DNA of 64,000 nucleotides from IMG/VR virus record IMGVR_UViG_3300027899_000001, positions 124,001-188,000 of that record, one strand, 5' to 3'. Positions 11,835 to 58,618 of this stretch are shown here, piece by piece; the stretch's first letter is position 1, and the number at the start of each line of letters is the position of its first letter. The notes under the pieces were generated by a model, which was not told the origin of the DNA, did not search any database, and saw only the letters and a list, made by a program, of their open reading frames with translations. Both the position numbers and the translations under genes were made by a program.

Positions 11835-12338
11835 TTAAAACTCAGTATCACTAAAATATTTTACGTATTCAGATTTTATAACAAAACTTACACCAAAAAA
11901 ATCATATTCATCTTCAAATGGTTCAGAAGGATGTGTAGTTATTTCTTCAGTCATACAATCTAAAATATTTGCTTTTTTTAATAAGTATTTTGATAATTCT
12001 ATTTTATTTACTGGATTTTTATCTTTGTTAAAATACCTATCTGAATAATACTGAAAATGAAATATATGCTTTCCTAAATCTTCATATACTCTCATATACT
12101 GTAAACAATTACTTGGAGATATTGGTCTAACTCCTTTATCAGGACGATTTGAATCTGTGTATATATAAATCCGTGTGTTACTTATTAAATCATATATTAT
12201 CTTTCTAGACTTTTTAATTATATTAGAAATTCCTATTCCTAAATCATGAACAGGATCTGATTCTTCAGTAAATTTCTCATTTACTGATTCTAATAATTTA
12301 TCTACAATTATATTTACAAATTTCAAAATATTTTTCAT
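11835..12338 (-). CDS. DPxxDLGIG-tag family, 1 module (probably the frameshifted 4th module of the upstream gene)
   Basis: Internal-type tag ESVNEKFTEESDPVHDLGIG; payload resembles module 3 of 12298..13560. Confidence 0.65.
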   Translation of the reverse strand: MKNILKFVNIIVDKLLESVNEKFTEESDPVHDLGIGISNIIKKSRKIIYDLISNTRIYIYTDSNRPDKGVRPISPSNCLQYMRVYEDLGKHIFHFQYYSDRYFNKDKNPVNKIELSKYLLKKANILDCMTEEITTHPSEPFEDEYDFFGVSFVIKSEYVKYFSDTEF

Positions 12339-13560
12339 ATTCAGGTTTTATTGTAAATTCAAAATCCCATACAGAAAACTCAGAATTTTTATTTGTGTAC
12401 TTATTAACTTCTGGCGCCATTTGAAAATTTGGTTCTAAAAAGGCGTCCAAATTTGATTCCTTTAATAAATCTTTTATATATTTTATTTTGTTTATTTCAA
12501 TGCCATTAACATCTCTATAGATATTACTAAATAAGCCTATATCTAAAATTAACTTTTCTTCGTTAGATGTATTTAATCTATTAAATATACGTAAATGTCT
12601 TAGACTTGATGGCCCTGATATTAATCTAAGATTTTCTTTACGAATGTCAGAATCGTATACATAAATCTTTTTATTAGTACAATCATCTAAGCATCTTTTA
12701 ATTAATTTTTTAATAGAATTTTTAATAGATACTGGCAGTCCAATTCCTAAATCATGAATTGGATCACCTTCTTCTGTAAATTTTTCATTTACATTTTTAA
12801 TACTTTTAAATAAATCTTGATATTCTGGTTTAATATCATATTCTATGGTCTTATTATCATATCCATAATCTCTTTCTTTTCCAGGAAATATTAAATAAGA
12901 ACTTAATCCTACATTTTTTAATGCTCCATTCATACGTGCTTTTAAATGCCATTTATAATATGATTCTATTATAGCTATAATAAATTTATTGTTTGATATA
13001 TAAAGCGATTTAACAAAAAATTGATTATGTCTATACGCTCTGAATTTTTTTAATTTATCTTTAATCTCTTGAGTATATCCTATACCCATATCAGCAATAG
13101 GATCGCTGTCTTCTGTAAAAGCTTCATTTATACGTACATAGTGTTCTTTTTTAGAGGTATCTATTACGCCTGGATCAGATACCCACCTTGAATCTCCATG
13201 TATTCCTGCCGTTTCATAATCTGGAAATTCTCCTCTACGAATATAGAGATCAGTGCCGTTTCTTCTTGATATACGTGGACCATACATAATTCCAGTTCCT
13301 GAACCTTTTATATAAAGACCTACTTTTTCCATTAATCTTCTTCCTCTTTTTACCTCTGCTTCAGTAAGAAACTGCTTATAATATTTCTGCAGCCACTTAA
13401 GTAAGTCAACATGATCAGGATTAGAAAAATCTATTAAACGATTTATAACTGGTTGGCTTACATAAAAATAATAATAAACACGTTTTGCTCCTATATTCAA
13501 ATCATGAACAGGATCTGATTCTTCTTTAAATTTTTCGTTTATATGTTCTCTTACTATCAT
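12298..13560 (-). CDS. DPxxDLGIG-tag family polyprotein, 3 modules (start MIVREHINE at 13560)
   Basis: Three tag copies; ATGA overlap with the upstream gene. Confidence 0.8.
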   Translation of the reverse strand: MIVREHINEKFKEESDPVHDLNIGAKRVYYYFYVSQPVINRLIDFSNPDHVDLLKWLQKYYKQFLTEAEVKRGRRLMEKVGLYIKGSGTGIMYGPRISRRNGTDLYIRRGEFPDYETAGIHGDSRWVSDPGVIDTSKKEHYVRINEAFTEDSDPIADMGIGYTQEIKDKLKKFRAYRHNQFFVKSLYISNNKFIIAIIESYYKWHLKARMNGALKNVGLSSYLIFPGKERDYGYDNKTIEYDIKPEYQDLFKSIKNVNEKFTEEGDPIHDLGIGLPVSIKNSIKKLIKRCLDDCTNKKIYVYDSDIRKENLRLISGPSSLRHLRIFNRLNTSNEEKLILDIGLFSNIYRDVNGIEINKIKYIKDLLKESNLDAFLEPNFQMAPEVNKYTNKNSEFSVWDFEFTIKPEYEKYFEICKYNCR

Positions 13561-14033
13561 ATCGTTATTCCATGTATTGGTGTTTTGCAAACTGCTAAAA
13601 CATCTTCTGTTGTAAATTTTCCAGGATTACCAGAACATATAAAATGATGTTGAACTTCTAGCGGCGCGTATTTTAAAGAACGTAATCTATTGTTTGCGCA
13701 AGAAAAAGTTCCCCAATAATCATTCGATTCTAATACATATTTTGGACATCCTCTTAATGTTGTTAATTTATTTGATTGAATATTAAATGCTCCTATAACT
13801 GTTCCAAATTGAATGTATGGAGGTAATTCTGAATAAGGCCCAAGTTTTCCTTGTGATAAAAAAACATGGCATTCTTCAACATCTATAGTCAAATCATTAT
13901 TTATTGTGTATTTATTTGAAGGTATTCCCATTTTATCTAACCACTCAATTATCATTTTTTTAGAGCCAATGCCCATATCATGAACAGGATCAGATTCTTC
14001 TGCAAATTTTTCATTTATATATAGTGCTCTCAT
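13557..14033 (-). CDS. Tag family, LRR-like payload
   Basis: INEKFAEESDPVHDMGIG; NKLTTLRGCP..V, NRLRSLKYAP. Confidence 0.8.
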   Translation of the reverse strand: MRALYINEKFAEESDPVHDMGIGSKKMIIEWLDKMGIPSNKYTINNDLTIDVEECHVFLSQGKLGPYSELPPYIQFGTVIGAFNIQSNKLTTLRGCPKYVLESNDYWGTFSCANNRLRSLKYAPLEVQHHFICSGNPGKFTTEDVLAVCKTPIHGITI

Positions 14034-14470
14034 ACGACCTCAAAATGTTTATTCCAAATTAAAATATTGGCCTTTTTAGCCCACCATGTCCAGTGTTTTT
14101 TCCAAAAATTGTAATCATAAGAACGAGAAGCAGAGGTATCCCAAGCATTTTTACAATCATCTGGGTCTCCAAATGGAACTGCTTCAATATAGATATTGCC
14201 ATTTTTATATTTTTTAACAGTCATAACTATATAATAAAAATCATTAGCTGTAAGAGTATATCTAACATCACGTTGAGTTTTTTCAAATTCTAACCTATAT
14301 TTATCGCCCTCATCTGCTTTAACATGTGTATATATCATGTATACATCAGTTTTATTATGTATAATATCACTCGGTTTGATATAAGCCCATTTTAATCCTA
14401 TTCCTAAATCATGAATAGGATCACTTTCTTCAGTAAATTTCTCGTTTATGTATTCTTTTACTATTTTCAT
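14030..14470 (-). CDS. Tag family, 1 module
   Basis: MKIVKEYINEKFTEESDPIHDLGIG. Confidence 0.8.
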   Translation of the reverse strand: MKIVKEYINEKFTEESDPIHDLGIGLKWAYIKPSDIIHNKTDVYMIYTHVKADEGDKYRLEFEKTQRDVRYTLTANDFYYIVMTVKKYKNGNIYIEAVPFGDPDDCKNAWDTSASRSYDYNFWKKHWTWWAKKANILIWNKHFEVV

Positions 14471-14493
14471 ATATTCTATTTATCTAAAAAACA

Positions 14494-14521: not shown

Positions 14522-17500
14522 TTAGCACTTGGAATATTCGCAGGAATCGCAATGCACACATCCTTCTTCTCGAACTAAATTGCCACCACATTCTGGACAT
14601 TTTTCTTCAAGTTTTTCAATTATATATTTTGAAAGTATTCTTGTTGTAGCAGAACTAAAGGATGTTATATTATCATCAATTTTTCGAATAACTTTTATAA
14701 CATATTGTATTGGTGCTCTTTGTCTTAATAACATTGATGCTGTTAAAGTTAAAGTTCTTTGTTGTACTCGTTCTTCTGCTAATTGAAGATTATCTATTTC
14801 AAACTCACCGTTAATAAATTTGTAATGGCCCTTTTTAACTTTAACAGTTCTTCCGTGTGTATTTTTATCCATTGGTGGATTTTCAAATGCAAATATCTCA
14901 TAAGGCTTTCCTTTATATAAACCTACAATTACAGCAAACTTAATTCCACTTGCAGTTACAACATAATAATCTGCTTTTAATTCTTTAGGACGTTTTGGTG
15001 CATGAACTTCTGAAAAATCGTTTTCTTCTTTTTTGGTTATCAATACTCCTTGTCTTGAACCCTCTCTATAAATCGTACACCCTTTACATCCTGATTTCCA
15101 TGCGTGAAAATAAATTTTATTTACTTCTTCCAAAGATATATTTTCTGGAAGATTATGTGTTACTGAAATACTATGGTCAATCCATTTCTGAATTACTCCT
15201 TGCATTGTAACTTTTTCAATATAATCTATTGTATGAGATTCTGAACCATACCAAGGTGAATCTTTAACAAAACTTTCTACTTCTGCATCAGTTAAACTTT
15301 GTAAAAATTTAAGAGCTCCGTCTTGAGTAAATGTATTATCTGTAGCAGTTGTATACCACTTAATAAATTCAGGATGAAATACATTGTATTCTTGCCATGA
15401 ATCTCCGTTTTCATCTTTATAATCTACTTTGACTCCTGATTCGTTAGGATTTATTTTTCTTCTTCTCTTGTAATAAATCTTAAAAACAGGTTCAATGCCA
15501 GAGGTTGTTCTTGCAAGTATAGCAAGGGAGCCTGTGGGTGCAATAGACAGTGTCGCTATATTTCTTCGACCGTATTTCATATAATCTTTATACTCTGCAT
15601 TATCAAAGTGATTACTGATTACACGAATAATGAAAGGGTTTTGAGCTTCTTTATCTGCATTCCATATTGGAAAACAACCTCTTTCTTTGGCAAGTTGAAC
15701 CGATTCTTTATATGAGTTTACTGCAATAGTTTCAAATACTTTATCAATAAGTGTTGTAGCTTCTTTAGTTCCATATTTAATTCCAAGTTTAGCGAGCATA
15801 TCACCAAGGCCAAGAACTCCAATGCCTGTTCTTCTTCCTTTTCTTAAAACTTCAAGAACTGTTGTCCATACTCTTAATTCTGTTTGTTTTAAATAGAGTT
15901 CTTCTGGGTCACTATTTATTTTGGATATAATAGCCAATATCTTCTCTTCTTCCAATGACACGAGATCATCCATGAGTCTCTGTGAGACTCGAGCCGCTTT
16001 TGCTAATACATTAAAATCAACTTTTGCATTTGATTTATAAGGATTGGATACTACATTATTAAGATTTATAGATAATAACCTGCATGAATCAAATGGTGAC
16101 AGAGGTACTTCTCCGCAATTTTTTACACATATACCCGATGATGTTACAAATAAAGAATCTTCATAATTAGTTATAACGTGATAATTATGATTATCATCAA
16201 CTGTTATATTATAAACATCTTCATATCCATAAAATTCAATCGATTCAACTTTATGATTATTAGCAACTTGATTTCTAAAATTATCAAATGTAGTAAATCT
16301 AAATTCGTTTTCAATTTTTTGAGGATAGCCATTTTCTTTAGCATATTTTCTCCATCCATTTCTAGTAAGCTTTCCTTCTTTTTTAAATAATGTTTTTCCT
16401 GCTGCAATTAAATCGTCATTTGTATACGGGATATATCTTCCATTTTTTTCACCGGGATGAGAAGCAAATGATTGTTTGAATTCATCTGACATTTTATGAT
16501 AAGGATTTTTATCTCCTCTCATTCTTGCTGCATGAAATTCTATATGTTCATCACGTAACATTTTTACTAAATTTTCTGGACGATCATTTTTATTATTAAA
16601 ATCATAATGATGTATAGAATAAAGTTTATGATCAGTTTGTTCATCTTGATTAAAAAATTCATAAATTAGATGATATTGTCTTCTATTTCTAAAATTTCCT
16701 CCTGACATTTTGACTCCAGTTCTTGATACTTGTCTATAACCATTAGCGTCAAATGAATAGAAAGGTATTAAAGATTCTCCTAAAGATAAATCTTTTAATT
16801 GTTTATAATCTAATTTTGATGTTAAAATTTTATGATCGGGTGTTGCAATAAGTTCTGAACCATCATCCAATTTTAATTTCCATACTTCTGCTTTTTTCTT
16901 TGTTAAACGAGGATTTCTTGCCCATTTAATTTCAGTTTTTCCAGTTATTGGATTTGTAGAATATACTGGCACATCTAGTCTTTCATCAGTTAATTGTTTT
17001 ATTGATACCGCGTTTCTTCCATCAGCAGTTGCAATTAAAGTATTTCCTACAATACAAGGATTCGTTCCTTTAGTTGTAAAGCCTTCATCAGCATAACAAT
17101 CTGCTGGAGATTCTTTAATAATGTTATCCCAAAAGAGAATACCCGGCTCGGCATTTTTATGAGCTTGTTTAATTATTAAATCCCACAGTTCCTTTGCCTT
17201 AACTTTCATTATATAAGAACCGTCATCTCTTTTATATAATTTATTGTAAACCATTTGTTCTAAGAATACTGGTTGGTCATCAGTTATAGGCCATCTTAAA
17301 ATATAATCTGCATCTGCTTCAACTGCATGCATAAATTCATCAGTTATTTTCACAGACACATTTGCTCCTGTTACTTTTGTAAGATCATCCTTTTTTGTAA
17401 TAAATTTAGGACTATCTGGATGAGCGATATGCATAGAAATCATAAGTGCTCCACGTCTTCCATCTTGTGCAACTTCACGAGTAGAATGAGAATATCTATC

Positions 17501-17986
17501 CATAAATGATATTGAACCTGTCGATGTTTGAGCAGCGTTATTAACTTTAGCTTGTGAAGGTCTTAAGCCTTCAAGTGTTATTCCAACTCCTCCTCTACGT
17601 TTCATTAACTGAACCATAGATTCGTCTATATTAAAAATTCCTCCATAAGAATCTGCTCCATTATCTATAAAAAAGCAATTTCCTAAAGATGAAATCTGGT
17701 GTTTATTTCCTAATCCAAAAAGTATTGAACCTCCAGGAATGCAATACTTAAAGTGTTCTAAATGTTCTTTTATTGTTTCTCTTGTTAGAGCGTTAGGATA
17801 GTTCATTTCCATTCTATGAAATTCGTCTATCATTCTTGTTATTGTTTCTGTTGGGTGGCCTTCTTCCCATTTGCCATTGTTTTTAAGGGCGTACTTCTTT
17901 GCCCACACGTCGGAGGCGAGAGAGTCATTTTCAAAATAAGACATTCCCGCCTCTACTAACTGTTTTTCAGTATATTCAGTACTCAT
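14522..17986 (-). CDS. nrdJ: Class II (B12-dependent) ribonucleotide reductase with intein and C-terminal Zn ribbon
   Basis: SLGNCF, RRGALM, TNP|C..N|CGE, SIAPTG, SGIEP, IDHSIS.T.N, KGCTIYR; CPEC..CDSC. Confidence 0.92.
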   Translation of the reverse strand: MSTEYTEKQLVEAGMSYFENDSLASDVWAKKYALKNNGKWEEGHPTETITRMIDEFHRMEMNYPNALTRETIKEHLEHFKYCIPGGSILFGLGNKHQISSLGNCFFIDNGADSYGGIFNIDESMVQLMKRRGGVGITLEGLRPSQAKVNNAAQTSTGSISFMDRYSHSTREVAQDGRRGALMISMHIAHPDSPKFITKKDDLTKVTGANVSVKITDEFMHAVEADADYILRWPITDDQPVFLEQMVYNKLYKRDDGSYIMKVKAKELWDLIIKQAHKNAEPGILFWDNIIKESPADCYADEGFTTKGTNPCIVGNTLIATADGRNAVSIKQLTDERLDVPVYSTNPITGKTEIKWARNPRLTKKKAEVWKLKLDDGSELIATPDHKILTSKLDYKQLKDLSLGESLIPFYSFDANGYRQVSRTGVKMSGGNFRNRRQYHLIYEFFNQDEQTDHKLYSIHHYDFNNKNDRPENLVKMLRDEHIEFHAARMRGDKNPYHKMSDEFKQSFASHPGEKNGRYIPYTNDDLIAAGKTLFKKEGKLTRNGWRKYAKENGYPQKIENEFRFTTFDNFRNQVANNHKVESIEFYGYEDVYNITVDDNHNYHVITNYEDSLFVTSSGICVKNCGEVPLSPFDSCRLLSINLNNVVSNPYKSNAKVDFNVLAKAARVSQRLMDDLVSLEEEKILAIISKINSDPEELYLKQTELRVWTTVLEVLRKGRRTGIGVLGLGDMLAKLGIKYGTKEATTLIDKVFETIAVNSYKESVQLAKERGCFPIWNADKEAQNPFIIRVISNHFDNAEYKDYMKYGRRNIATLSIAPTGSLAILARTTSGIEPVFKIYYKRRRKINPNESGVKVDYKDENGDSWQEYNVFHPEFIKWYTTATDNTFTQDGALKFLQSLTDAEVESFVKDSPWYGSESHTIDYIEKVTMQGVIQKWIDHSISVTHNLPENISLEEVNKIYFHAWKSGCKGCTIYREGSRQGVLITKKEENDFSEVHAPKRPKELKADYYVVTASGIKFAVIVGLYKGKPYEIFAFENPPMDKNTHGRTVKVKKGHYKFINGEFEIDNLQLAEERVQQRTLTLTASMLLRQRAPIQYVIKVIRKIDDNITSFSSATTRILSKYIIEKLEEKCPECGGNLVREEGCVHCDSCEYSKC
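16118..17056 (-). mobile_element. Intein (313 aa) with HNH endonuclease, in the RNR active-site loop
   Basis: CIVGNT, ATPDHK, IHHYDFNNKND..NL, VYNITVDDNHNY...VKN|C. Confidence 0.9.
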
Positions 17987-18055: not shown

Positions 18056-19531
18056 TTATGCAATAAAAGTGCTAGCAGTTGACTTCCTTTTATTTAGAAT
18101 TTCTTTCAATGCTTCTGCTTCTTTTTCTGCTATAAATGATAGTTTTTTAGACTGTCTTCTTTGAGTATAATATTCAGTTAAAATTTCTGGAAGTAAAGGT
18201 TCATAAGATGCATCAAAGACTGCGCCGCTTGATGTTTTGATTTCTGTGTTCTTTGGAATATATGATTTATCTTTCTTTATGAAATTTTCAATGGATAACT
18301 TAAACTGTCTCATTATTGAGGGATAAAGAGACGCAAAGTCAAAAGATGCAACCCAAGGATAAAGATTAGGAATTGGTTGAAAAACAAAAGCTCCTTCATA
18401 AGATTCTCTATCTTTTTTATCTTCTCTTTTTGGAAAAATTTGGCCTCTTTTATATGCATATCTTACTAAAGTTGCTTCTAAAGTAAAGATAGGTGAAAAT
18501 GCATCCATTGCCTCAACTCTTGTGATATTTGCTAATCCTAAGAATGTTCCCATAGTTTTTAACTTTGTATCTAAAAGTTCTACAAGAACACTGTCTATGG
18601 CATTATAAAATACGTATTGAGGAAAATCTTTTTGATATTGTTCTTGAAGTGTGCCAGGATATTTTACTTTTCTAACTTCTAATGCTTCTTCTGATACAAA
18701 ATCTAATGTATCATTTTCTTTTACTTCAATAGTTCTATCCCATTTTTGATATATTGACATATAATCAACAATAAGTTTATGTTGAGGCAACATTATAACC
18801 ACATCAGCATTTTTATCTTTAATTTTATGTTCATACCATTGTCCTGTTGGAGATAACCAAGATACATCTAAATTAAGTTTTTTGCATCTATTCATTAAAT
18901 ATCTCCAATCATATCCCCAAAAGTTCCAGCCTGTTATAAGTGGAGAAACTCTAACATAATTATAAAGAAAATCATAAAGCATATCTGCTTCATTTGCATG
19001 GTATTTATAAATAAAGCGATATTTTTTTCCAAATTTCTTAACATGATCATTTATATTTTTTTCAATTGTTTTACAATCTTCTCCACTTAATATCTTACTT
19101 CCGAAGACTGTTATATCAGGATATTGAGAAAAAGCTACTGTAGTTACTTTATTTTGTGCAGTTTCAGGATCTGCAAATCCTTCATCTGTTACCTCTACTT
19201 CAATATCTGCTACTGAAAGCTTAGGCATATTAGGTTCAAATAAATGTGATGTAAGTTCTTCACCAGCATCTATAAAGAATTCTTGAGTTCTATATCTATT
19301 AAGAAATTGTGTCGGAACTTTTCTTACTGGCTTAAAATCCCAAGATTGCAATCCTTGAACTGCTCCGCCTCTTTGAGCATACATATACATATACTGTTGA
19401 TTAGCCGGAATGTTTAATTGTGTAAACCCAATCATTCCATCTTTTTTTACATATGATATGATAAATTTTTGAGGTCTCTGTTCTATATTTATAATCATTT
19501 CTTTTGTATTTTGTATTATATGTATTGACAT
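18056..19531 (-). CDS. Family B DNA polymerase, N-terminal subunit (exonuclease plus motif A; gp43A-like)
   Basis: DIE, TGWN..YD, YNAIDS, SFDFASLYPSIM; stops before motifs B and C. Confidence 0.85.
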   Translation of the reverse strand: MSIHIIQNTKEMIINIEQRPQKFIISYVKKDGMIGFTQLNIPANQQYMYMYAQRGGAVQGLQSWDFKPVRKVPTQFLNRYRTQEFFIDAGEELTSHLFEPNMPKLSVADIEVEVTDEGFADPETAQNKVTTVAFSQYPDITVFGSKILSGEDCKTIEKNINDHVKKFGKKYRFIYKYHANEADMLYDFLYNYVRVSPLITGWNFWGYDWRYLMNRCKKLNLDVSWLSPTGQWYEHKIKDKNADVVIMLPQHKLIVDYMSIYQKWDRTIEVKENDTLDFVSEEALEVRKVKYPGTLQEQYQKDFPQYVFYNAIDSVLVELLDTKLKTMGTFLGLANITRVEAMDAFSPIFTLEATLVRYAYKRGQIFPKREDKKDRESYEGAFVFQPIPNLYPWVASFDFASLYPSIMRQFKLSIENFIKKDKSYIPKNTEIKTSSGAVFDASYEPLLPEILTEYYTQRRQSKKLSFIAEKEAEALKEILNKRKSTASTFIA

Positions 19532-21621: not shown

Positions 21622-22773
21622 TTATTTATTTTCATTCATTTGTTGTGAAAACTCATCAAATGTAATAATTTCATGTTCAAACTTTTTTGTAGTTATAGCG
21701 TTTTGATTTCCCTTTTCTTTTTTCGTTTTAAACGGAGATGTTTTTCCACCTTTTAACATTTTACCTATTGTAGTATTATCATTGTGTGGATTAGTGTTCT
21801 CTTCTTCTATCTTTTTAGGACGTTTTTTAGCAACAGTTTTCCTTTTTTTCTTAGGATTTGGTGATTGTGTATATGGTTTCTTATTTATAGAATTACCCCA
21901 ATTATCTCCAGAGCCTGTTGATGATGTACCTGTCATTTGAGCTCCAGTTGTAGCTGCCATAGAAGCTGGTGCTCCTGTACCCATTCCTGGTGTAGCTCCG
22001 GCTCCCATCATTTCACTTACTGTTCGTGCTTTCATATTTGAATTTTTATTTTCATTTTTTTGAACTATTACATTTCTTAAAAATCTTGATTGAAAAAGTT
22101 CATCTTTATCTCCTTTTCTAATCGTAATATATCTTCTATAATATCTATTTAATATTTGCCAATATTCTTCCTTTAAAATAGAACTCTTATCTTCCTTATC
22201 TGCTATAATTTCATTTAAATCATCTACTTTCAATATATGAGGAGCAACTTCATAAAGCCATTCAGCAAAATCCTCCCAAGTATCAAAAGTTCTTTTAGCA
22301 TATACGCCTATTCCTAAATCTTTAATAGGATCTGAATGTTCTGTAAATTTTTCATTTACACTTGAGTTTTGTTTTTTCTTTAAGATTTTTAAAAATTCTT
22401 TAAAACTATTATAAGTATTAGGAGCTAATAGTTTTTCAGATATTATTTGTTTGCTAATTTGTTTTAAATCTAAGTCAATTCTATCTAATAAAAAGAATGC
22501 CTGATCAAAATATTTTTTCCAAATTAAATTTATAAAAAGATGTCTTCCTTGTTCTTCTTTATCAAATTGATTAGTAGACATAAAGTAATCTGCAAAATCA
22601 TATCTATTATGAACTAAAAGATATCGTAATGTATAGTATCCTCCTGCATTTTCATCATTTTTTAACCCATGATATCCTCTATATTTGTCTAAAGCCCGTT
22701 TCATTCCAATACCCATATCATGAACAGGATCAGTATCTTCAACAAACTTTTCATTTATTTTAAGCTTTTGCAT
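21622..22773 (-). CDS. Tag family polyprotein, 2 modules plus a Gly/Lys-rich tail
   Basis: INEKFVEDTDPVHDMGIG and VNEKFTEHSDPIKDLGIG; ATG at 22773. Confidence 0.8.
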   Translation of the reverse strand: MQKLKINEKFVEDTDPVHDMGIGMKRALDKYRGYHGLKNDENAGGYYTLRYLLVHNRYDFADYFMSTNQFDKEEQGRHLFINLIWKKYFDQAFFLLDRIDLDLKQISKQIISEKLLAPNTYNSFKEFLKILKKKQNSSVNEKFTEHSDPIKDLGIGVYAKRTFDTWEDFAEWLYEVAPHILKVDDLNEIIADKEDKSSILKEEYWQILNRYYRRYITIRKGDKDELFQSRFLRNVIVQKNENKNSNMKARTVSEMMGAGATPGMGTGAPASMAATTGAQMTGTSSTGSGDNWGNSINKKPYTQSPNPKKKRKTVAKKRPKKIEEENTNPHNDNTTIGKMLKGGKTSPFKTKKEKGNQNAITTKKFEHEIITFDEFSQQMNENK

Positions 22774-23784: not shown

Positions 23785-24137
23785 TCTTCTATAAAAATTT
23801 TTTCATCTCCTGTAGAAAAATATTCATTATCTTCTTCACTAATAAACGCAAAATTTGAAGAGGTTTCAATAGATTTATTTGTAGTATCATCTGTAAAATG
23901 AAATCTAACAGATTTTACAGGAAATGTATAATTTTTTTCTGGACTATTCCATCCACCTTTATGAAATTTTCCTGATACTTTTTTTCCTTTGAATTGTGAT
24001 ATCCAATCTCTCCATTCTACATAAGCAACTCCTAAAATATCATGGTGTACTTTTCTAGGACTTACTCCCCCAATTCCCATGTCATGAACAGGATCTGATT
24101 CTTCGTCAAATTTCTCAAATATACCATGTGCTCTCAT
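23781..24137 (-). CDS. Tag family, 1 module
   Basis: IFEKFDEESDPVHDMGIG; payload resembles module 2 of 45560. Confidence 0.8.
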   Translation of the reverse strand: MRAHGIFEKFDEESDPVHDMGIGGVSPRKVHHDILGVAYVEWRDWISQFKGKKVSGKFHKGGWNSPEKNYTFPVKSVRFHFTDDTTNKSIETSSNFAFISEEDNEYFSTGDEKIFIEE

Positions 24138-47474: not shown

Positions 47475-47947
47475 GTAGTTCTTATCTTATCTTTTGCTAT
47501 TTTACAATATTTCTGTACGTATTCTCTTGTAAATCTTTTTTTATTACCACCACACATAAATTTTTTGCCAATAATTTCTGGACAATATTCTAATGAAGTT
47601 AATTTATTAAATCTGCAATCAAAATCGCCAGTTACTATTTTAGGACATCCCCTAAGAGTTGTCATATTACAATTACATATTATAAATTCTCCATCTATTT
47701 TATTAAAATTTATATACTCTGGAAAATTTCCGCAATTATCTGGAAGCGCAGTAAATCCTTGGCAATCTATAGTGCCATCGTTATTTATAGTGTAATTTCT
47801 AATTCCATCACACTGATTATTATTAGATATTCTATTTATCATTCCTATCCATTTTTCAATTTTGTGTATTATTCCTATACCCATATCTTGTATAGGATCT
47901 GATTCTTCTGAAAATTTTTCGTTGATATGTTCTCGGACTATGTTCAA
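47471..47947 (-). CDS. Tag family, LRR-like payload
   Basis: INEKFSEESDPIQDMGIG; MTTLRGCPKIVTGDFDC. Confidence 0.8.
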   Translation of the reverse strand: MNIVREHINEKFSEESDPIQDMGIGIIHKIEKWIGMINRISNNNQCDGIRNYTINNDGTIDCQGFTALPDNCGNFPEYINFNKIDGEFIICNCNMTTLRGCPKIVTGDFDCRFNKLTSLEYCPEIIGKKFMCGGNKKRFTREYVQKYCKIAKDKIRTT

Positions 47948-47957
47948 AGCGATTTTA

Positions 47958-48002
47958 TTTTATATATTTAAGAAAAAAGGAGATAATTTATTTTATCTCC
48001 TT
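47958..48002 (-). promoter_or_regulatory. Terminator fused to a late-promoter variant
   Basis: AAGGAGATAA/TTATCTCCTT hairpin, T tract, AAATATATAAA. Confidence 0.6.
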
Positions 48003-50973: not shown

Positions 50974-52164
50974 ATGAAAATAGTACGAGAACATATAAAT
51001 GAAAAATTTTCTGAAGAATCTGATCCTGTACATGATTTAGGCATAGGCATAATACATGCTATTGAAAAATTCTGTGATAAACACAGAAAAGTGATAATGC
51101 CTACTTATGAGTGTGATGAAAAAGATATTATGCTATTAATATGTGTTGATAGAAAAAAGCATGATTATGTAGAAGATTTATTAAAATTAGGAGCTAATGT
51201 ACATACAAGCGCTGGAATACATCTGGGTAATGAAGATCTACCTGTTAGATACGCAATATGGAACAATGATTATGAAATGACAGAATTATTATTAAAATAT
51301 GGAGCATCTATAGAAAACGCATTTGATGAGGATGTTCTTGAACTTATAGAAACTGGAGATTATATGGGTGGAAAAAAAAGTAAAGAATTAATAGACTTAG
51401 TAAAACAACATTTAGAAAAACCAGTAAATGAAAAATTTTCTGAAGAATCAGATCCTATATATGATTTAGGAATAGGAATAATTACAAAACTTAGAAAATT
51501 TTTAAAAGATCATCACTGCGATAATTTTGATTTACGTTATAAACCTGATCAAGATAAAGCTCTTTCTTTATGTGTTAAAACCAATACTCCAGATTTTATA
51601 CAGTATTTAGTATCATTGGGAGCAGACCCTAATTTTAGTCCTGAAGATAAAGATTTTGGGTTATATTTAATGAATGCTGCATACGTAGAAGATTGGGAAG
51701 TTTGTAAAGCTTTAGTTAATAGCGGAGCAGATTTAGATAAAACTATAACATGTTCGATAGATAGACAGACTCCGATAACTTTAAAAAATCTTGAAAGATT
51801 TAAAGAAATGATAGAAAATCCTATAAATGAAAAATTTTCAGAAAAATCAGATCCTATTAAAGATATGGGTATAGGTTTATATACAATAAGAAATTTTGAA
51901 AATTTAAATGAAATAGCAGAATTTATCATATCTATAATGCCATATATTTTAAAAACACATAAAATTCCTGAAGATATTATACATTCTGAGGCTTTTATAC
52001 TAAAACAAAAATATATTAAACCTCTTGATAATTATATTTATAAATATATTAGATTAAATAATGAAGAAATAACATCAGCAATAGATTATAAATTATTTGA
52101 AAATATGTTAAGTATTTTAGCAAAAAGAGGCTTTAAATATCCTAAAACTAAATTCATACATTAA
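50974..52164 (+). CDS. Tag family polyprotein, 3 modules (ankyrin, ankyrin, RxF-class), inverted orientation
   Basis: Three tags; LLKLGANV, LLKYGA, LVSLGADPN. Confidence 0.82.
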   Translation: MKIVREHINEKFSEESDPVHDLGIGIIHAIEKFCDKHRKVIMPTYECDEKDIMLLICVDRKKHDYVEDLLKLGANVHTSAGIHLGNEDLPVRYAIWNNDYEMTELLLKYGASIENAFDEDVLELIETGDYMGGKKSKELIDLVKQHLEKPVNEKFSEESDPIYDLGIGIITKLRKFLKDHHCDNFDLRYKPDQDKALSLCVKTNTPDFIQYLVSLGADPNFSPEDKDFGLYLMNAAYVEDWEVCKALVNSGADLDKTITCSIDRQTPITLKNLERFKEMIENPINEKFSEKSDPIKDMGIGLYTIRNFENLNEIAEFIISIMPYILKTHKIPEDIIHSEAFILKQKYIKPLDNYIYKYIRLNNEEITSAIDYKLFENMLSILAKRGFKYPKTKFIH

Positions 52165-52246: not shown

Positions 52247-52888
52247 CTAGACTAAACACTGAATTTCCTCTTTTTTCAATATAGTTTGTATTACCCAATA
52301 CGCATCTACAAGATCATCTACATGTTCTATCCAATTCCTTCCTCCTTTTTTCATGAAAATTTCTCGTTTTTCAAACAATTTTAAACGAAACTTACAATGA
52401 GGTGGTCCTGAACGAATAAATTCGTCGATCATCTCAGATTTTCCCATTCCTTTTTTTGCACAACCAGCTATACTTTTAATTGTAATAGGAGAATAAGTAT
52501 ACATATGATCTAATGAAACATATTGGGAAAGTTCATTCATCAATATATATTTGTAACCACCTAATTGTATTCCAGAATCTCCTCCCGATCCATAAGATAA
52601 CCCTTCAAATGCGAGATAGGTATCTCCATTAAAGTAACACTTAAGTGATTCAGTGATAAGATTTGAAAGGTATCTTGCGTTTTCTACTTCCCAACGCATT
52701 TTGGAAGTTAATCCTAATTCATGTTCTTTATTATCTATACGATCAATTATAGTTATACCAGATTCTCTAAAAGTTTTAATAGATTTGTCAGAAATTGAAT
52801 ATGGCCAACTCATAAAAGAATATTTGCCATTTGAAAAGATGCATGCCGCTGGTTTATTTATTGAAAAATCGAATCCAATTATATTCAT
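52247..52888 (-). CDS. RuvC-like Holliday junction resolvase
   Basis: IIGFDFS, FEG, SP.TIK, DDLVDAYW. Confidence 0.75.
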   Translation of the reverse strand: MNIIGFDFSINKPAACIFSNGKYSFMSWPYSISDKSIKTFRESGITIIDRIDNKEHELGLTSKMRWEVENARYLSNLITESLKCYFNGDTYLAFEGLSYGSGGDSGIQLGGYKYILMNELSQYVSLDHMYTYSPITIKSIAGCAKKGMGKSEMIDEFIRSGPPHCKFRLKLFEKREIFMKKGGRNWIEHVDDLVDAYWVIQTILKKEEIQCLV

Positions 52889-53667
52889 TTATCTTTAAGT
52901 GTTAATGCGTGAAAATCATGATAGTCAGGATAATGATAAGTAAGTATGTTAACTAATCTTACTGCACATTTTTTACGTATATCTTCAAATGTAAAATCAG
53001 GAATAATATCAGTATAAATAGTTAAAGTTCCTCCTACATAATCAGGCAAATATTTTAATTGGTTTTTAGTTTTAAATACACAAGAAAATTGTCCTGTTAT
53101 TTTTCCAAATTTAATATAAGACGGCAAGTTAGTATTTTCTAAAGAAGAAAAATTTACATATTCTGCATTTATCTTTAAATCTTTACTTATATTTTCGCCT
53201 TTAATAAAACCACGTTTTCTTAATTCTGTTACAAAGGAATCAATTTTTTGCCTAATGCCTATACCCATATCATGAATAGGATCAGAATCTTCTGTAAAGG
53301 CTTCATTTAATGGATCTACATTGATATAAAAATGTTCTTTAAGAACTTCTGCAACTATTTTTCTAGCTTTTAACATATCTTTTTTTGTGTCATTTATATG
53401 AGAAAATGCTCGGCATGAATTATTGAAAGCAATTTGAACTGGTATATTTCTAATAGCATCTGAAATAGTAAATGACGCTATAGCAGCATATTTATGTTTA
53501 TAATAAAAAGAATATTTAGAAAAAAATTTTTCTACAAACTCTTCGGGATTTTTATTTATTTTTTCATTTTCAATTTTCCAAAAATTTATTAAACCTATTC
53601 CCAAATCTTTTATTGGATCGCTTTCTTCTGTGAAAATTTCGTTTATATGTTCTCTAACTAATCTCAT
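52885..53667 (-). CDS. Tag family polyprotein, 2 modules
   Basis: INEIFTEESDPIKDLGIG; LNEAFTEDSDPIHDMGIG. Confidence 0.8.
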   Translation of the reverse strand: MRLVREHINEIFTEESDPIKDLGIGLINFWKIENEKINKNPEEFVEKFFSKYSFYYKHKYAAIASFTISDAIRNIPVQIAFNNSCRAFSHINDTKKDMLKARKIVAEVLKEHFYINVDPLNEAFTEDSDPIHDMGIGIRQKIDSFVTELRKRGFIKGENISKDLKINAEYVNFSSLENTNLPSYIKFGKITGQFSCVFKTKNQLKYLPDYVGGTLTIYTDIIPDFTFEDIRKKCAVRLVNILTYHYPDYHDFHALTLKDK

Positions 53668-54440: not shown

Positions 54441-54481
54441 TAAAAATAATAATTTATTTTATATATTTAATAAAAAATATA

Positions 54482-54596: not shown

Positions 54597-55538
54597 ATGA
54601 AAGAATTTAGAAAAACAAAAGATGACCTTTTTATATGTGAAGAATGTGAACGAACATTTGCATCTTATCAAGGTTTACGAAATCATATTAGGCATTCACA
54701 TAAACTAATATCTCAAAAAATATATTATGATATTTACAGAAAAGAAGAGAACGAAGATAAATGTAAAATTTGTAATAATGATGCGCCTTTTATATCATTA
54801 TTTTATGGATACAAACCTGGGTGTTGTAAAAAACATATAAATTTATATTCCTATAAAAAGAAATCTCAAAAAATGAAAATTAAATATGGAATAGAAAATC
54901 AATTTCAAAGAGCTGATATAAAAGAAAAAATGAAAATAACAAATATTAAAAAATTAAATGTAGAATATCCTTCACAATCAAAAGAAGTAGTATTAAAAAT
55001 CAAAAAAACAAAGAAAGAAAAATATAATGATGAAAATTATAATAATACTGAAAAACGAAATAAAACTACACAAAATAAGTATGGATATAGTACTGTATTA
55101 AAAGACAAACAAAAAATGAAAATTTCTATACTTAATAAATATAATGTAGAAAATGTTATGCAATGTCCTGAAATTTATAAAAAACAACAAATGTCTGGCT
55201 TTTTATCTAATAATTATAGAAATACTGATATTTATTATAGAGGGTCATATGAATTAGATTTCTTAGAAACATTTTATGATAAATATCCTGATATTATTAA
55301 TGGGCCTGTAATTAAATATAAATTTAAAGGAAAAAATAGAATATACTTTCCAGATTTTTACATACCTTCTTTAAATCTTATAATTGAGATAAAAAGTTTG
55401 TATTATTATAATAAATATAAAGATAAGTGTTACGTAAAAGAACGCGCAGTAATTAATAACGGTTATAGCTATAGTTTAATTTTAAATAAAAATTATAAAA
55501 ATTTTAACGAGCGAGAGCATAGCCCATTGCAGCAGTAA
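54597..55538 (+). CDS. Homing-endonuclease-like protein (Zn finger plus PD-(D/E)XK)
   Basis: Paralog of 2455..3255; YFPDFYIPSLNLIIEIKS. Confidence 0.75.
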   Translation: MKEFRKTKDDLFICEECERTFASYQGLRNHIRHSHKLISQKIYYDIYRKEENEDKCKICNNDAPFISLFYGYKPGCCKKHINLYSYKKKSQKMKIKYGIENQFQRADIKEKMKITNIKKLNVEYPSQSKEVVLKIKKTKKEKYNDENYNNTEKRNKTTQNKYGYSTVLKDKQKMKISILNKYNVENVMQCPEIYKKQQMSGFLSNNYRNTDIYYRGSYELDFLETFYDKYPDIINGPVIKYKFKGKNRIYFPDFYIPSLNLIIEIKSLYYYNKYKDKCYVKERAVINNGYSYSLILNKNYKNFNEREHSPLQQ

Positions 55539-55830
55539 CAAGACGACTTGTCATTAATTTTCCTAATACTCCTGTTTCTTCTATTCCAAGAACTTTACAA
55601 ATAGCTTTTCCAATTGCTGGACCAGCAAGAGCGCCAACACCGGCTCCTAATAAACCTGTGAAAATTCCTTCGTCTATTTCTTCGCCCTTTTCAAGTTTAT
55701 CTACAATAAGATTATAAGTTCTTTCAGCTTCTTGAATTTGAGTAGCAGTTAATCCTTTAATATCTTCAGATTCAAATATCTTTGAAGTTGTTGAATATTT
55801 TAAATCGTTATATGTCGGAAATTTTTCCAT
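55504..55830 (-). CDS. Small protein with glycine-zipper hydrophobic C-terminal half
   Basis: EIDE|GIFTGLLGAGVGALAGPAIG; putative late promoter at 55846-55856. Confidence 0.65.
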   Translation of the reverse strand: MEKFPTYNDLKYSTTSKIFESEDIKGLTATQIQEAERTYNLIVDKLEKGEEIDEGIFTGLLGAGVGALAGPAIGKAICKVLGIEETGVLGKLMTSRLVTAAMGYALAR

Positions 55831-56357
55831 GATAATATATTTTTATTTATATATTCTTTATTTAGCGTCCATATAATTGTTTTTTTAATGCTATTTGTTT
55901 TTTTTAATTCTTTTTGTAATTGTTTTATTTTATCTGATAAATATCTTTCACTTCCATAACGTATTATGTCTAATTCTCTAATTATTGGTTTTAAATTATT
56001 TGGAAGAGAATAAAGTGGACCCGCAGTATCATCAGCCTGAGATATTACAAACCAACCTATTTCTGGTTTTAAATTAGTTAATGAATGTTCTGCTATTATG
56101 TCTTCTGCTGCTTCAACAGATTCTGCGAAATAAATATCTATGTCTTCAAAATCAGAATCCCAACAAGTTATATAGTAAATATCATTAGAATCTCCTGATG
56201 TCATAGATATTTTATCATAATCAAATTCTGTATCATATCTTTTATCAATTATATGTATAAATTGTTCTATAATTTCTTCGGGTTTAATACCAATGCCCAT
56301 ATCTTTGATAGGATCTGATTCTTCTTTAAATTTTTCAGTTATATATTGTGCTTTCAT
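55800..56357 (-). CDS. Tag family, 1 module
   Basis: ITEKFKEESDPIKDMGIG. Confidence 0.8.
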   Translation of the reverse strand: MKAQYITEKFKEESDPIKDMGIGIKPEEIIEQFIHIIDKRYDTEFDYDKISMTSGDSNDIYYITCWDSDFEDIDIYFAESVEAAEDIIAEHSLTNLKPEIGWFVISQADDTAGPLYSLPNNLKPIIRELDIIRYGSERYLSDKIKQLQKELKKTNSIKKTIIWTLNKEYINKNILSWKNFRHITI

Positions 56358-56941: not shown

Positions 56942-56991
56942 TTTAAAACTTTTTTAATATATATCTATATAATACTATAATCTATATATTT

Positions 56992-58137
56992 ATGAAGAAT
57001 CCGATTAAAAATCAAAACAACGAATTTATATGTGAAGAATGTAATAAAACATATATCAAATTAGATGGATTATCCAAACATATTGGTGTTATTCATCAAA
57101 ATAAAAAAGAATATTACGACAAATATCTAAAAGAAGAAAATGAAGATATTTGTCCCATATGTGGAAATAAAAATCCATATTTAAATAGATGGGACAGAGG
57201 ATATAAGAAAACCTGTTCAATAAAATGTGCTAATATATTAAGACATCAATTACAAGCAAACACACTATTAAAAAAATTTGGTGTAGAAAATGTTATGCAA
57301 ATAAAAGAAGTTAGAGAAAAATATGAAAATACATGTTTTGAAAAATATGGTGTTAAAAATGCTATAGAAAATAAAGATGTTAGAGAAAAATCAAAACAAA
57401 CTTGTTTAAAACATTTTGGAGTTGAAAATCCATTGCAATCATTAGAAATACAGACACGAGGAAGAAAAACAATGAAAGAAAAATATGGAGCCGAATATAC
57501 TTGGCAATCTGAATCCCTTATGAATAAAGTTAAAGAAATAAATATAAAAAAATATGGGGTTGAGTGCCCTTCTCAAAACGAAAAAATAAAAGAAAAAATT
57601 AAAAAAACAACAAAGGAAACCACAGGATATGAATATAATTTTCAAAATAAAGAATTAATGATAAATTCTATGTTAAATAAATATGGTGTTGAAAATATAT
57701 CTCAATTAGAAGAAACACAAAATAAAATAATAAAAACAAATCTAGAAAAATATGGAGTTACTCACCATTTTCAAAACAAAGAGATTTTTTTAAATGCTCA
57801 GAAAAAAGCATTTAAAGTGTTTCAATTTAAAAATACAAATATTTGGTATCAAGGTTCTTATGAATTAGATTTTATTAATAAATATTATGATAAATTTCCA
57901 GATATACAAAGAGGCCCATCAATTCCATATAAATTAAATAATAAAAATAGAATATATCATGCTGATTTTTTTATTCCATCATTAAATTTAGTTATCGAAT
58001 GTAAAAGTAGTTATTATTATAAAAGATTTAAAAAACAAGATATTGCAAAGAAAAAAGCCACTATTTCTAATGGCTTCAAATATATTATGATAACTAATAA
58101 AAAATATAATAAATTCATTAAATTATATTGCGCTTAA
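56992..58137 (+). CDS. Homing-endonuclease-like protein (Zn finger, many KYGVEN repeats, PD-(D/E)XK)
   Basis: Paralog of 2455 and 54597; YHADFFIPSLNLVIECKS. Confidence 0.75.
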   Translation: MKNPIKNQNNEFICEECNKTYIKLDGLSKHIGVIHQNKKEYYDKYLKEENEDICPICGNKNPYLNRWDRGYKKTCSIKCANILRHQLQANTLLKKFGVENVMQIKEVREKYENTCFEKYGVKNAIENKDVREKSKQTCLKHFGVENPLQSLEIQTRGRKTMKEKYGAEYTWQSESLMNKVKEINIKKYGVECPSQNEKIKEKIKKTTKETTGYEYNFQNKELMINSMLNKYGVENISQLEETQNKIIKTNLEKYGVTHHFQNKEIFLNAQKKAFKVFQFKNTNIWYQGSYELDFINKYYDKFPDIQRGPSIPYKLNNKNRIYHADFFIPSLNLVIECKSSYYYKRFKKQDIAKKKATISNGFKYIMITNKKYNKFIKLYCA

Positions 58138-58147
58138 TATATTCATG

Positions 58148-58618
58148 TTACATTTCTTTATTTATTTTATACAATTCTCTTCCGTGAGCTTTAAGTTTCT
58201 TTGCCAATTGTCTACTTGTAAACTCTTCAGCGCCATTATCTTTTAATAATTTAATCATATCTTCATCTTCATTACTTTTTGCAGTGTTTAGGATGCCATA
58301 GTGTATAGAAAGATGTAAATTTGCTCCTTTTTCTATTAGCCATTTTGCTAATTCTAAATTTTTATTAAGAACTACCCACTCTATAACTGATCCTCTATAC
58401 GCATTTATATCTGCGCCGTTTTCAATTAAATATTTTACATAATCTTCTTTATTTTGTTTAGCACAGTATAATAAACAAGTATCAATATCAACATAATCTG
58501 ATTTTGTAAGTTTTTTTACAAATTCTTTTATTTTATGCATCATTCCAATATCCATGTCTTTTATTGGATCCGATTCTTCTTTAAACTTTTCGTTTATATA
58601 TTCTCTAACTAATTTCAT
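58148..58618 (-). CDS. Tag family, ankyrin payload
   Basis: INEKFKEESDPIKDMDIG; VKYLIENGADIN, WLIEKGAN. Confidence 0.82.
   Translation of the reverse strand: MKLVREYINEKFKEESDPIKDMDIGMMHKIKEFVKKLTKSDYVDIDTCLLYCAKQNKEDYVKYLIENGADINAYRGSVIEWVVLNKNLELAKWLIEKGANLHLSIHYGILNTAKSNEDEDMIKLLKDNGAEEFTSRQLAKKLKAHGRELYKINKEM

Follow-up and report, generated by a model that had tools for sequence, protein, structure and literature searches.

A repeated 25-residue peptide in a T4-related megaphage, a likely capsid-cargo tag

Tagged ORFs in the window

The window analysed is a stretch of 64,000 nucleotides, bases 124,001–188,000 of a 405-kb contig of an uncultivated phage. A peptide of 25 residues occurs 33 times in 22 of its ORFs. 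The copies comprise a leader or linker ending in [ILV]-N-E, followed by KFxEESDPIxD[LM]GIG, and each stands in front of a protein module. A profile HMM built from the motif finds exactly 33 copies (E from 2e-7 to 2e-18), while the next best hit in the six-frame translation has E = 0.28. A regular expression of the motif matches 33 times in the window and 0 times in 200 base shuffles and 200 codon shuffles. The original prediction, which had counted 33 copies in these 22 ORFs, is therefore confirmed exactly as an observation, including the copy number in each ORF.

Thirty copies lie on the minus strand and three on the plus strand, the latter in the ORF at 50974–52164. Three copies are degenerate: 12733–12792 has EGDP, 33111–33185 has DPDP..TMGIG, and 45824–45886 has EFDP..SMGIG. 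The Ser codons are TCA (14), TCT (6), AGC (4), TCG (3), and AGT (1), and the pairwise identity of the tag DNA is 0.82 at codon positions 1 and 2 but 0.59 at position 3. Conservation is therefore at the protein level, as had been proposed. N-terminal copies follow a leader of 10 residues (MK[LI]V[RK]E[HY]INE) or 8 residues (M[KR]A..[IF].E), whereas internal copies keep only [ILV]-K-E-x-[ILV]-N-E. The modules in the window are 102–176 aa long, except for two of 241 and 422 aa, a small correction to the 90–170 aa originally given.

The first tagged ORFs, all on the minus strand, form a contiguous run. The ORF at 11835–12338 (167 aa) carries one tag of the internal type (LLESVNE|KF; 12222–12290) and overlaps the end of the preceding tag ORF by 41 nt. 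The latter, 12298–13560, has three modules, with tags at 13480–13554 (N-terminal), 13069–13137, and 12733–12792. The open reading frame extends to 13590, but the likely true start is the leader Met at 13560. Next in coordinate order are 13557–14033 (158 aa), with the 8-residue leader MRALYINE and an LRR-like module, and 14030–14470 (146 aa), with the 10-residue leader MKIVKEYINE.

The ORF at 21622–22779 (minus strand, 385 aa) has two tags (22696–22767 and 22294–22368), and its second module is 241 aa long with a low-complexity basic tail. The ORFs at 23311–23784 (157 aa) and 23781–24137 (118 aa), both on the minus strand, have the leaders MKAQYIYE and MRAHGIFE, respectively, and the second is preceded by a terminator hairpin and the exact motif AATATATAAAATAAA at 24147–24161. 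The minus-strand ORF at 26276–27370 has three modules (tags at 27290–27361, 26921–26995, and 26567–26641), and its likely start is again the leader Met, at 27370, rather than the upstream start of the reading frame at 27430.

Five further ORFs, also on the minus strand, lie between 28630 and 33194. The ORF at 28630–29091 (153 aa) has an LRR-like module and the exact upstream motif at 29099–29113. The ORF at 29115–29468 (117 aa) has an ankyrin-like module, and that at 29878–30225 is 115 aa long. The ORF at 30225–31040 (271 aa) has two modules, ankyrin-like and then LRR-like, with tags at 30960–31034 and 30561–30632. The ORF at 32844–33194 (116 aa) has a degenerate tag (LGE|KFLEDPDPIQTMGIG) and the exact upstream motif at 33207–33221.

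The minus-strand ORF at 43659–45563 (634 aa) begins with MKFSSYISWLNENINE, followed by a HIGH-motif nucleotidyltransferase-like domain, an internal tag (44880–44948), and a 422-aa module. It is adjoined on the minus strand by 45560–46207 (215 aa; tags at 46121–46198 and, degenerate, 45824–45886), 46207–46644 (145 aa), 46641–47474 (277 aa; tags at 47388–47465 and 47028–47102, the second module LRR-like), and 47471–47947 (158 aa, LRR-like module), which has the exact upstream motif at 47954–47968.

The only plus-strand tag ORF, 50974–52164 (396 aa), has three modules, two ankyrin-like and one small alpha/beta, with tags at 50983–51057, 51418–51489, and 51814–51885. The remaining three are on the minus strand: 52885–53667 (260 aa; tags at 53584–53658 and 53245–53316, the second module LRR-like), 55800–56357 (185 aa, leader MKAQYITE), and 58148–58618 (156 aa, ankyrin-family module).

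The upstream motif is shared with the portal gene, but it also precedes uvsX and homing-endonuclease genes, and thus it does not prove late expression.

Modules and portability of the tag

The tag stands in front of unrelated predicted folds. The modules fall into at least 20 unrelated clusters and at least three different folds, and the same module family occurs alone, first, or later in an ORF. In the AlphaFold model of the protein at 47471–47947, tag residues 1–22 have pLDDT of about 50 and the domain is above 93; in that of the third module of 50974–52164, the tag is below 50 and the domain about 90. The tag is therefore predicted to be a disordered extension on two unrelated, confident folds. 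The module bodies are basic, with a median pI of 8.75 compared to 6.16 for other ORFs. The modules that could be named are ankyrin and LRR-like binding domains, and no recognisable effector enzymes were found among the modules. An injected anti-defence or host-takeover arsenal, as originally proposed, remains an inference.

The shuffling of modules between ORFs, together with the overlap of adjacent tag genes by ATGA, which makes fusions and fissions easy, may suggest that the tag is simply the best conserved stretch of one huge paralogous family, or a junction that promotes cassette shuffling, with no biochemical role of its own. This is very unlikely, because the modules are unrelated in cluster and fold, synonymous sites vary freely, so that the DNA identity (mean 74%, maximum 91% over 54 nt) is too low for a recombination joint, and near-invariant residues over 337 copies need selection on the peptide.

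Distribution of the tag

The tag occurs about 84 times in the 75% of the genome that was read, and in 1,647 metagenomic protein clusters. It is absent from Pfam, PHROGs, and GenBank phages, with no tblastn matches to the tagged proteins in 50,697 phage records. It is found only in phage sequence and is absent from cellular genomes, the occurrences among 185,579 species genomes being limited to 2 tiny MAG contigs. The statement that no described family carries this tag holds for every library and paper collection searched.

Tagged genes lie next to the portal gene in this genome, and next to the protease-scaffold gene (see below) in three phages with two tag variants (loci L184, in this genome, L117, and L197). 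However, tagged genes are scattered through replication and nucleotide-metabolism regions as well as structural ones, and are so frequent that their lying next to head genes could be chance. Moreover, most relatives with 64–81% identical capsid proteins have no tag within 10 kb of the protease, so the tagged genes there are lineage-specific insertions rather than an ancestral head module.

Head genes and the inferred protease motif

The phage is T4-like in its head and other genes: portal (PF07230, phrog_213), gp4, gp13, terminase, sheath, tube, the gp55 late sigma factor, gp32, and UvsX. By capsid protein its closest GenBank relatives are the Lak megaphages (48%). The genome encodes, at L184:7573–9918, a T4 gp21-type prohead protease domain (Peptidase_S77, PF03420), which scores 57 bits against a cut-off of 27 bits and is 28% identical to T4 gp21 (BLASTP, E = 1e-10). 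The GELDHP and SSRAAG motifs, containing the His and Ser, align with GELNHP and SSRGLG of T4. The domain is fused to a coiled-coil scaffold and is followed by a Gp23-type capsid protein.

The specificity of this protease may be estimated independently of the tag. The capsid protein reads ...HFHALNE|AAMGG where T4 gp23 has its LTE|A cut (...GSFLTE|AEIGG), and this inferred maturation site is invariant, apart from one LTE, in 17 relatives. The protease-scaffold has 10 [ILV]NE motifs, an approximately 8-fold enrichment over the 1.26 ± 1.1 found in shuffles (0 of 5000 reach 10), and relatives have 6–13. The motif thus inferred, [ILV]-N-E, is that of P3–P1 of the tag. It was put at 96–98% of 337 tags in front of KF overall, but by position P3 is I/L/V in 95–97%, P2 is N in 66–71%, and P1 is E in 97–98%. 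In contrast, [ILV]NE is depleted inside module bodies (0.84 against 1.54 per 1000 aa, P = 1e-4). The inferred sites in the capsid protein and the scaffold, however, do not have KF at P1'–P2'.

The leader also resembles the T4 capsid targeting sequence. Of 203 N-terminal leaders, 134 (66%) are exactly 10 residues long, position 4 is V/I in 69%, and position 7 is H/Y/F in 73%. MKLVREHINE matches the IPII/IPIII leader MKTYQEFIAE at M1, K2, E6, I8, and E10, with a hydrophobic residue at 4 and H/Y/F at 7. In T4, residues 4 and 7 set targeting and residues 8 and 10 set processing (PMC9026906).

In relatives, a variant tag (SGLSxIGIG[SK]) keeps only the leader, [ILV]NE, and a hydrophobic-G-I-G end, while the 13 residues following [ILV]NE are replaced. 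This points to the GIG end, rather than KFxEESDP, as the conserved working part.

Alternative readings of the tag

The tag may instead be a cytoplasmic docking peptide, by which many binding modules attach to one common phage or host hub protein in the infected cell, with nothing packaged and the [ILV]NE merely part of a helix. Such a reading is in keeping with the predicted disorder and portability of the tag, the protein-binding folds without enzymes, the scattering of the genes among replication genes, and the 15 residues after the putative cut, which are more conserved than a cut site needs. It is considered unlikely, because it does not explain the agreement of P3–P1 with the scaffold and capsid-protein motif, the depletion of this motif inside modules, the likeness of the leaders to the T4 sequence in length and key positions, or the persistence of the leader and [ILV]NE in the variant tag.

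Docking to the shell without cleavage is considered less likely still. In this view the D[LM]GIG end would act like an encapsulin targeting peptide and bind the inner face of the HK97-fold capsid protein, while the leader would have another role and the proteins, including the multi-module ones, would stay uncut. Encapsulin targeting peptides are NTGGDLGIRK (native) and DGSLGIGSLKG (consensus), whose L-G-I core sits in a hydrophobic pocket of the shell and is followed by a basic residue (PMC7925596). Correspondingly, [LM]-G-I-G is present in more than 90% of tags, and in the window tag D[LM]GIG is followed by hydrophobic and basic residues. A resemblance of 4–5 residues is weak, however, and the evidence for [ILV]NE as a protease site stands independently. 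Both peptides are short and flexible (the tag by prediction), with a hydrophobic-Gly-hydrophobic core, and those of encapsulins load unrelated cargo into an HK97-fold shell. The encapsulin peptides are C-terminal, uncleaved, and belong to cellular nanocompartments encoded in one operon with the shell gene; the tags are N-terminal or internal, and the shell here is a Gp23-type phage capsid protein.

Lastly, the tag might mark the modules for timed degradation by a host or phage protease other than the prohead protease, for example through the new N-terminus exposed after a cut. It is a predicted disordered N-terminal peptide, and the genome also holds a DUF2201/AAA_5 pair of unknown role. No evidence points to such a protease, however, and the match to the head protease motif and to the T4 leader would be left unexplained. 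This reading is very unlikely.

Comparison with known systems

The closest counterparts are the T4 capsid targeting sequence and the proteins IPI, IPII, and IPIII, as well as Alt, gp67, and gp68. There, as inferred here, a propeptide of about 10 residues, ending in [LI]xE and cut by gp21, is carried by otherwise unrelated small basic proteins, and the cargo sets are diverse and fast-evolving; the phage belongs to the same broad lineage with the same protease family. T4, however, has no counterpart of the 15 nearly invariant residues that follow the putative cut here, and carries a handful of such proteins rather than about 100 modules per genome. The unit also occurs internally, up to 10 times per ORF, which implies cargo polyproteins. 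The ankyrin, LRR-like, and other modules have no similarity to the T4 internal proteins, and no Pfam or PHROG family annotated as an internal protein matches the tagged proteins.

Giant phages (phiKZ, 201phi2-1, SPN3US) package dozens of head proteins, including a 21-member paralog family (PMC10052503), which are processed after Glu at a short motif by a protease related to T4 gp21, and their propeptides hold several redundant sites. Those propeptides are long (about 100 residues or more) and not a fixed tag, the cited review describes cleavage after Glu with few other determinants rather than [ILV]NE, no multi-module polyproteins are described for them, and there is no sequence similarity. 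Here the motif pattern is present and enriched in the scaffold, although as sequence alone and without homology to those proteins. One ORF with several independently folding products separated by a repeated putative protease site also recalls the viral polyproteins cut by a virus-encoded protease, a strategy known mainly from RNA viruses and retroviruses. Cargo polyproteins of phages are not known to have been described, as far as a small literature search could show.

A model for the tag

The original interpretation, in which the leader targets the capsid, cleavage after xNE frees modules with a common N-terminus, and the remaining tag serves docking or ejection, is partly supported. The analysis establishes the tag, its portability and its predicted disorder, the protease gene, and the agreement between P3–P1 of the tag and the motif inferred for the protease. 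Incorporation into the prohead and presence in virions, cleavage, docking, ejection into the host, and any role there, including one against host defences, are inferred from sequence alone.

With these reservations, the explanation held somewhat more likely than not is that the 25-residue unit is a composite capsid-cargo signal of a T4-related megaphage, although about 100 different cargo modules per genome would exceed anything documented. In this view, its first part, the 10- or 8-residue leader at N-termini or [ILV]KEx[ILV]NE internally, is the counterpart of the T4 capsid targeting sequence, and would carry the polypeptide into the assembling prohead. The [ILV]-N-E at its end would be the cut site of the phage's own gp21-type prohead protease. 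Cutting after the Glu would remove the leader and, in ORFs with 2–10 modules, would separate the modules, so that these ORFs act as cargo polyproteins. Each freed module would be a mostly basic domain of about 100–170 aa, often ankyrin or LRR-like, keeping the acidic KFxEESDPIxD[LM]GIG at its new N-terminus. Because the variant tag in relatives conserves only the hydrophobic-G-I-G end of this stretch, this end is proposed to dock the cargo to the scaffold or to the inner face of the capsid shell.

Occurrence and conservation of the tag

The occurrence of the peptide tag in the window was examined with a profile built from the motif, which finds 33 copies (E from 2e-7 to 2e-18) in the same 22 ORFs and with the same copy numbers as had been listed in the original prediction, whereas the next best hit in the six-frame translation has E = 0.28. 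A regular expression of the motif matches 33 times in the window and never in 200 base shuffles or 200 codon shuffles. The original observation is therefore real.

The Ser codons of the tag are TCA, TCT, AGC, TCG and AGT, and third codon positions are 59% identical between copies, against 82% for positions 1+2. The conservation is therefore in the peptide, as had been predicted, and the idea that the tag is conserved as DNA is rejected on this codon variation. N-terminal copies follow a 10-residue leader (MK[LI]V[RK]E[HY]INE) or an 8-residue leader (M[KR]A..[IF].E), while internal copies keep [ILV]-K-E-x-[ILV]-N-E. The modules that follow, predicted to be of 90-170 aa, are 102-176 aa in the window, with two longer ones of 241 and 422 aa. 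The tag of ORF 11835-12338 is of the internal type, and this ORF overlaps the end of the three-module ORF 12298-13560 by 41 nt in another frame. Its module is homologous to the third module of that ORF, which could reflect a fission by frameshift or a programmed shift.

The genome

The contig, IMGVR_UViG_3300027899_000001, is 405,016 bp long with about 27% G+C, and the window covers its bases 124,001-188,000. Near-identical assemblies exist at JGI and ENA. The window holds a ribonucleotide reductase large subunit with an intein (14522-17986), the exonuclease/N-half of a T4-type DNA polymerase (18056-19531), dUTPase, gp32, a helicase, NAD-dependent DNA ligase and many homing-endonuclease-like genes. 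It also holds an IMPDH in two pieces flanking a NUMOD3 homing-endonuclease gene (8320-8979, 8983-10014 and 10065-10898), with a weak intein-splicing hit on one piece. Elsewhere on the contig are T4-type portal, gp4, gp13, large terminase, sheath and tube genes, the gp55 late sigma factor, UvsX, and the C-half of the polymerase, which lies about 48 kb away from the N-half (L036:10472-11641; L numbers denote the loci that were retrieved for analysis). The capsid protein is 48% identical to that of the Lak megaphages of Prevotella, the closest GenBank records.

A phage protein with PKD domains and a T9SS CHU_C sorting domain hints at a host in Bacteroidota. There are also giant ORFs of 5,523, 5,002 and 1,751 aa and a collagen-like fibre with an S74 chaperone domain (these and the foregoing protein are at L060:13852-16389, L096:1-9973, L100:1-8583 and L051:2-9947). 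A 185-aa protein of the 2',5' RNA ligase family, with a faint Acb1 hit, lies between baseplate genes (L101:12943-13500) and is a candidate cyclic-nucleotide phosphodiesterase (anti-CBASS). Many copies of DUF7487 proteins with zinc-finger and TnsA-like endonuclease hints occur on either strand (window 2455-3255, 4090-5064, 54597-55538 and 56992-58137, and also L102), and these are probably a mobile endonuclease family. Two extremely acidic proteins of 661 and 322 aa, with long D/E runs (24214-26199 and 27647-28615), sit between tag-gene clusters, the first of them in the only stretch with raised G+C (0.35). They have no Pfam family, and could be DNA mimics or scaffold-like proteins.

Distribution of the tag

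In the roughly 75% of the contig that was read (leaving out 1-17, 105-116, 193-210, 257-295 and 397-405 kb), there are about 84 distinct tags, which occur in replication, baseplate, neck, portal and capsid regions. Over all retrieved loci there are 337 tags in 224 distinct ORFs, with up to 8 per ORF. A profile search of 1.84 billion representative proteins gives 1,647 hits at E of 1e-3 or better, with up to 10 tags in one 1,203-aa protein, and the JGI metagenomes hold at least 600 pattern matches. In contrast, Pfam and PHROGs have no family for the tag, and megablast and tblastn searches of tag proteins against 50,697 GenBank phage records, the Lak phages included, found nothing, a 34-aa consensus query giving only chance hits (E of 3 or more). 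Among 185,579 species genomes, the tag occurs only on two tiny MAG contigs. A literature search for the motif letters found nothing relevant.

Nature of the tag and of the modules

The tag is a portable linear peptide and not part of a fold. The 33 modules of the window fall into 20 BLAST clusters, and the same family (LRR-like, ankyrin-like, or a small alpha/beta domain) occurs alone, first or later in an ORF. Of 66 tagged ORFs from many contigs, 18 have ankyrin repeats and hardly any other Pfam family matches (11 families in all, 7 of them ankyrin). AlphaFold models of two unrelated modules are confident for the domain (pLDDT 90-99) and unconfident for tag residues 1-22 (pLDDT 40-51). A Foldseek search of the LRR-like module against the PDB gave no significant match, the best E being 0.5, although all the weak hits were LRR proteins. 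Homologues of the LRR-like module exist with degenerate tags or none. The module bodies are basic, with a median pI of 8.75 and 65% above 8, against 6.16 and 33% for other ORFs of the window, while the tag itself is acidic.

Head genes and the inferred specificity of the prohead protease

The head genes of this genome were located at L184 (contig 294.8-316.6 kb), the capsid protein being found through a relative picked up in the metagenome scan. A 781-aa protein there (L184:7573-9918) has an N-terminal domain, residues 1-170, that is Peptidase_S77, the T4 gp21 family, with a score of 57 bits and the His and Ser motifs aligned. The rest of the protein is a coiled-coil scaffold, and a Gp23-type capsid protein (L184:10001-11773) follows.

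Three independent read-outs give the likely specificity of this protease. First, the capsid protein reads HFHALNE/AAMGG (the slash here and below marks the cut, whether known or putative) where T4 gp23 reads GSFLTE/AEIGG, its known maturation site, and this site is conserved in 17 relatives. Second, the protease-scaffold has 10 [ILV]NE motifs, against 1.26 +/- 1.1 in composition-matched shuffles (0 of 5000), and relatives have 6-13, as expected if the scaffold is chopped up as in T4. Third, the module bodies are depleted of the motif (0.84 against 1.54 per 1000 aa, P = 1e-4). [ILV]-N-E is precisely what precedes KF in the tags, where P3 is I/L/V in 95-97%, P2 is N in 66-71% and P1 is E in 97-98%. 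This coincidence between the P3-P1 of the tag, the scaffold enrichment, the capsid-protein site and the depletion in modules is not accounted for if the tag is a cytoplasmic docking motif, which appears unlikely, nor if it is a family relic or recombination joint, or a turnover signal, both of which appear very unlikely.

The leader

The T4 record gives MKTYQEFIAE/A for IPII and IPIII, and published mutagenesis places targeting at residues 4 and 7 and processing at residues 8 and 10 (PMC9026906). The leader of the present tags has the same length in 66% of N-terminal copies, and the commonest form, MKLVREHINE/K, shares M1, K2, E6, I8 and E10, with a hydrophobic residue at position 4 and H/Y/F at position 7. 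A few proteins carry the leader alone. One is a 118-aa acidic protein just after the tail tube gene (L078:11782-12138; MKYVKEYLNE/EW). Another is the 634-aa protein of the window (43659-45563), whose N-terminus is MKFSSYISWLNENINE. The untagged N-terminal 212 aa of the latter look like a HIGH-motif nucleotidyltransferase (PPAT/NMNAT fold; PDB 3nd5 at E = 0.008), which, together with a NAPRTase at L028:6925-8142, hints at phage NAD salvage.

Upstream motifs

The T4 late promoter TATAAATA is not enriched in the window (36 matches against 28 expected). An early/late split of promoters was looked for. The exact 15-mer AATATATAAAATAAA lies 3-12 nt before start codons, often after a terminator hairpin, at window positions 5068-5082, 24147-24161, 29099-29113, 33207-33221, 33995-34009, 36264-36278, 47954-47968, 54453-54467 and 63095-63109, all on the - strand. 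It heads most tag-gene clusters, and it precedes the portal gene and other structural genes, including a baseplate-cluster gene, as well as a collagen-like gene after the capsid gene and the leader-only gene L078:11782-12138. It may be the gp55-type late promoter of this phage (core TATAAA(A)TA) or a general initiation region. Because it also precedes homing-endonuclease genes and (with 1 mismatch) uvsX, it should not be taken as proof of late expression. A different motif, paired TGTTAA(T)G...TGTTAA boxes, precedes replication and nucleotide-metabolism genes in the intergenic regions upstream of 17986 (RNR), 6262 (ligase), 50881, 52888, 973 and 1517, and is a candidate early or middle promoter or regulator site.

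A variant tag in relatives

Phages with 64-84% identical capsid proteins mostly lack the canonical tag near their protease genes. The absence of a canonical tag near the protease in 35 such relatives, one of which has a variant tag there, weakens the synteny argument that tags lie between the portal or phosphoesterase and the protease. Some of these phages carry genes that begin MKIVKEYLNE/IKQNSTTSGLSSIGIGS or MRAKLVNE/IKKEINKSGLSAIGVGS. In the relative's locus L197, three such genes (5970-7364, - strand) abut the protease-scaffold gene (L197:7581-9929). This second tag variant, which is carried by five IMG/VR contigs, has IKQN...SGLSxIGIG in place of KFxEESDPIxDMGIG. A word-index search with a variant-tag protein found only itself.

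Both leader types, the [ILV]NE, the spacing and the hydrophobic-G-I/V-G end are shared with the window tag, while the acidic KFxEESDP part is not. Therefore, it appears that the leader and the GIG end are the working parts. The GIG end resembles encapsulin targeting peptides (native NTGGDLGIRK, consensus DGSLGIGSLKG), whose L-G-I core binds the inner face of an HK97-fold shell (PMC7925596), although this is a resemblance in sequence only. Docking to the shell without any cleavage is a further possibility, but an unlikely one.

Interpretation

The best explanation, which is held to be only somewhat more likely than not, is that the unit is a capsid-cargo signal. In this view, the leader would take the polypeptide into the prohead, the prohead protease would cut after [ILV]NE and thereby separate multi-module ORFs into single modules, and the remaining tag, probably through its GIG end, would dock the cargo. 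Because T4-type prohead proteases act inside the prohead, cleavage would imply packaging. The peptide, its portability, the protease gene and the agreement of the tag with the inferred protease motif are results of the sequence analysis, whereas packaging, cleavage and docking are inferred from them without virion or expression data. The interpretation in the original prediction, of capsid-packaged, protease-released effectors injected into the host, is thus supported only in part, since ejection and an anti-defence role are guesses, and the recognisable modules are binding domains, not enzymes. It also weighs against the capsid-cargo reading that the tagged genes are everywhere in the genome, that their adjacency to head genes may be due to chance or insertion hot-spots, and that the 15 post-cut residues have no T4 counterpart. 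About 100 cargo species would be unprecedented, although SPN3US packs 55 head proteins including 21 paralogues (PMC10052503).

A bolder reading is unlikely but is not excluded by the evidence. In this reading, a clade of Lak-related megaphages loads its capsid through a two-part address label, of which the first part is a T4-type leader cut by the prohead protease at [ILV]NE, and the second is a hydrophobic-G-I-G peptide that docks on the inner face of the HK97-fold capsid shell in the way encapsulin targeting peptides do, with cargo made as polyproteins of up to ten modules and cut apart inside the head. That would be the first cargo-loading peptide shared in principle between phage capsids and encapsulins, and the first phage cargo polyprotein.

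A capsid targeting sequence on diverse internal proteins is already known from T4. The composite 25-residue tag, its internal repetition, which implies cargo polyproteins, its scale, and its restriction to a clade of uncultivated Lak-related megaphages are not described in any of the libraries and papers searched.

If the tag does what the sequence logic says, it would mark, by sequence alone, the packaged proteome of a group of uncultivated megaphages, with about 100 modules per genome and 1,647 protein clusters in public metagenomes. It would show that the T4 trick of a removable capsid address has been scaled up into a modular polyprotein system, and would supply a compact, defined peptide for loading foreign proteins into large capsids. 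It would also make directly testable the question of what huge phages carry into the cell besides DNA. The resemblance of the conserved GIG end to encapsulin targeting peptides, if real, would bear on how encapsulins and phage capsids are related.
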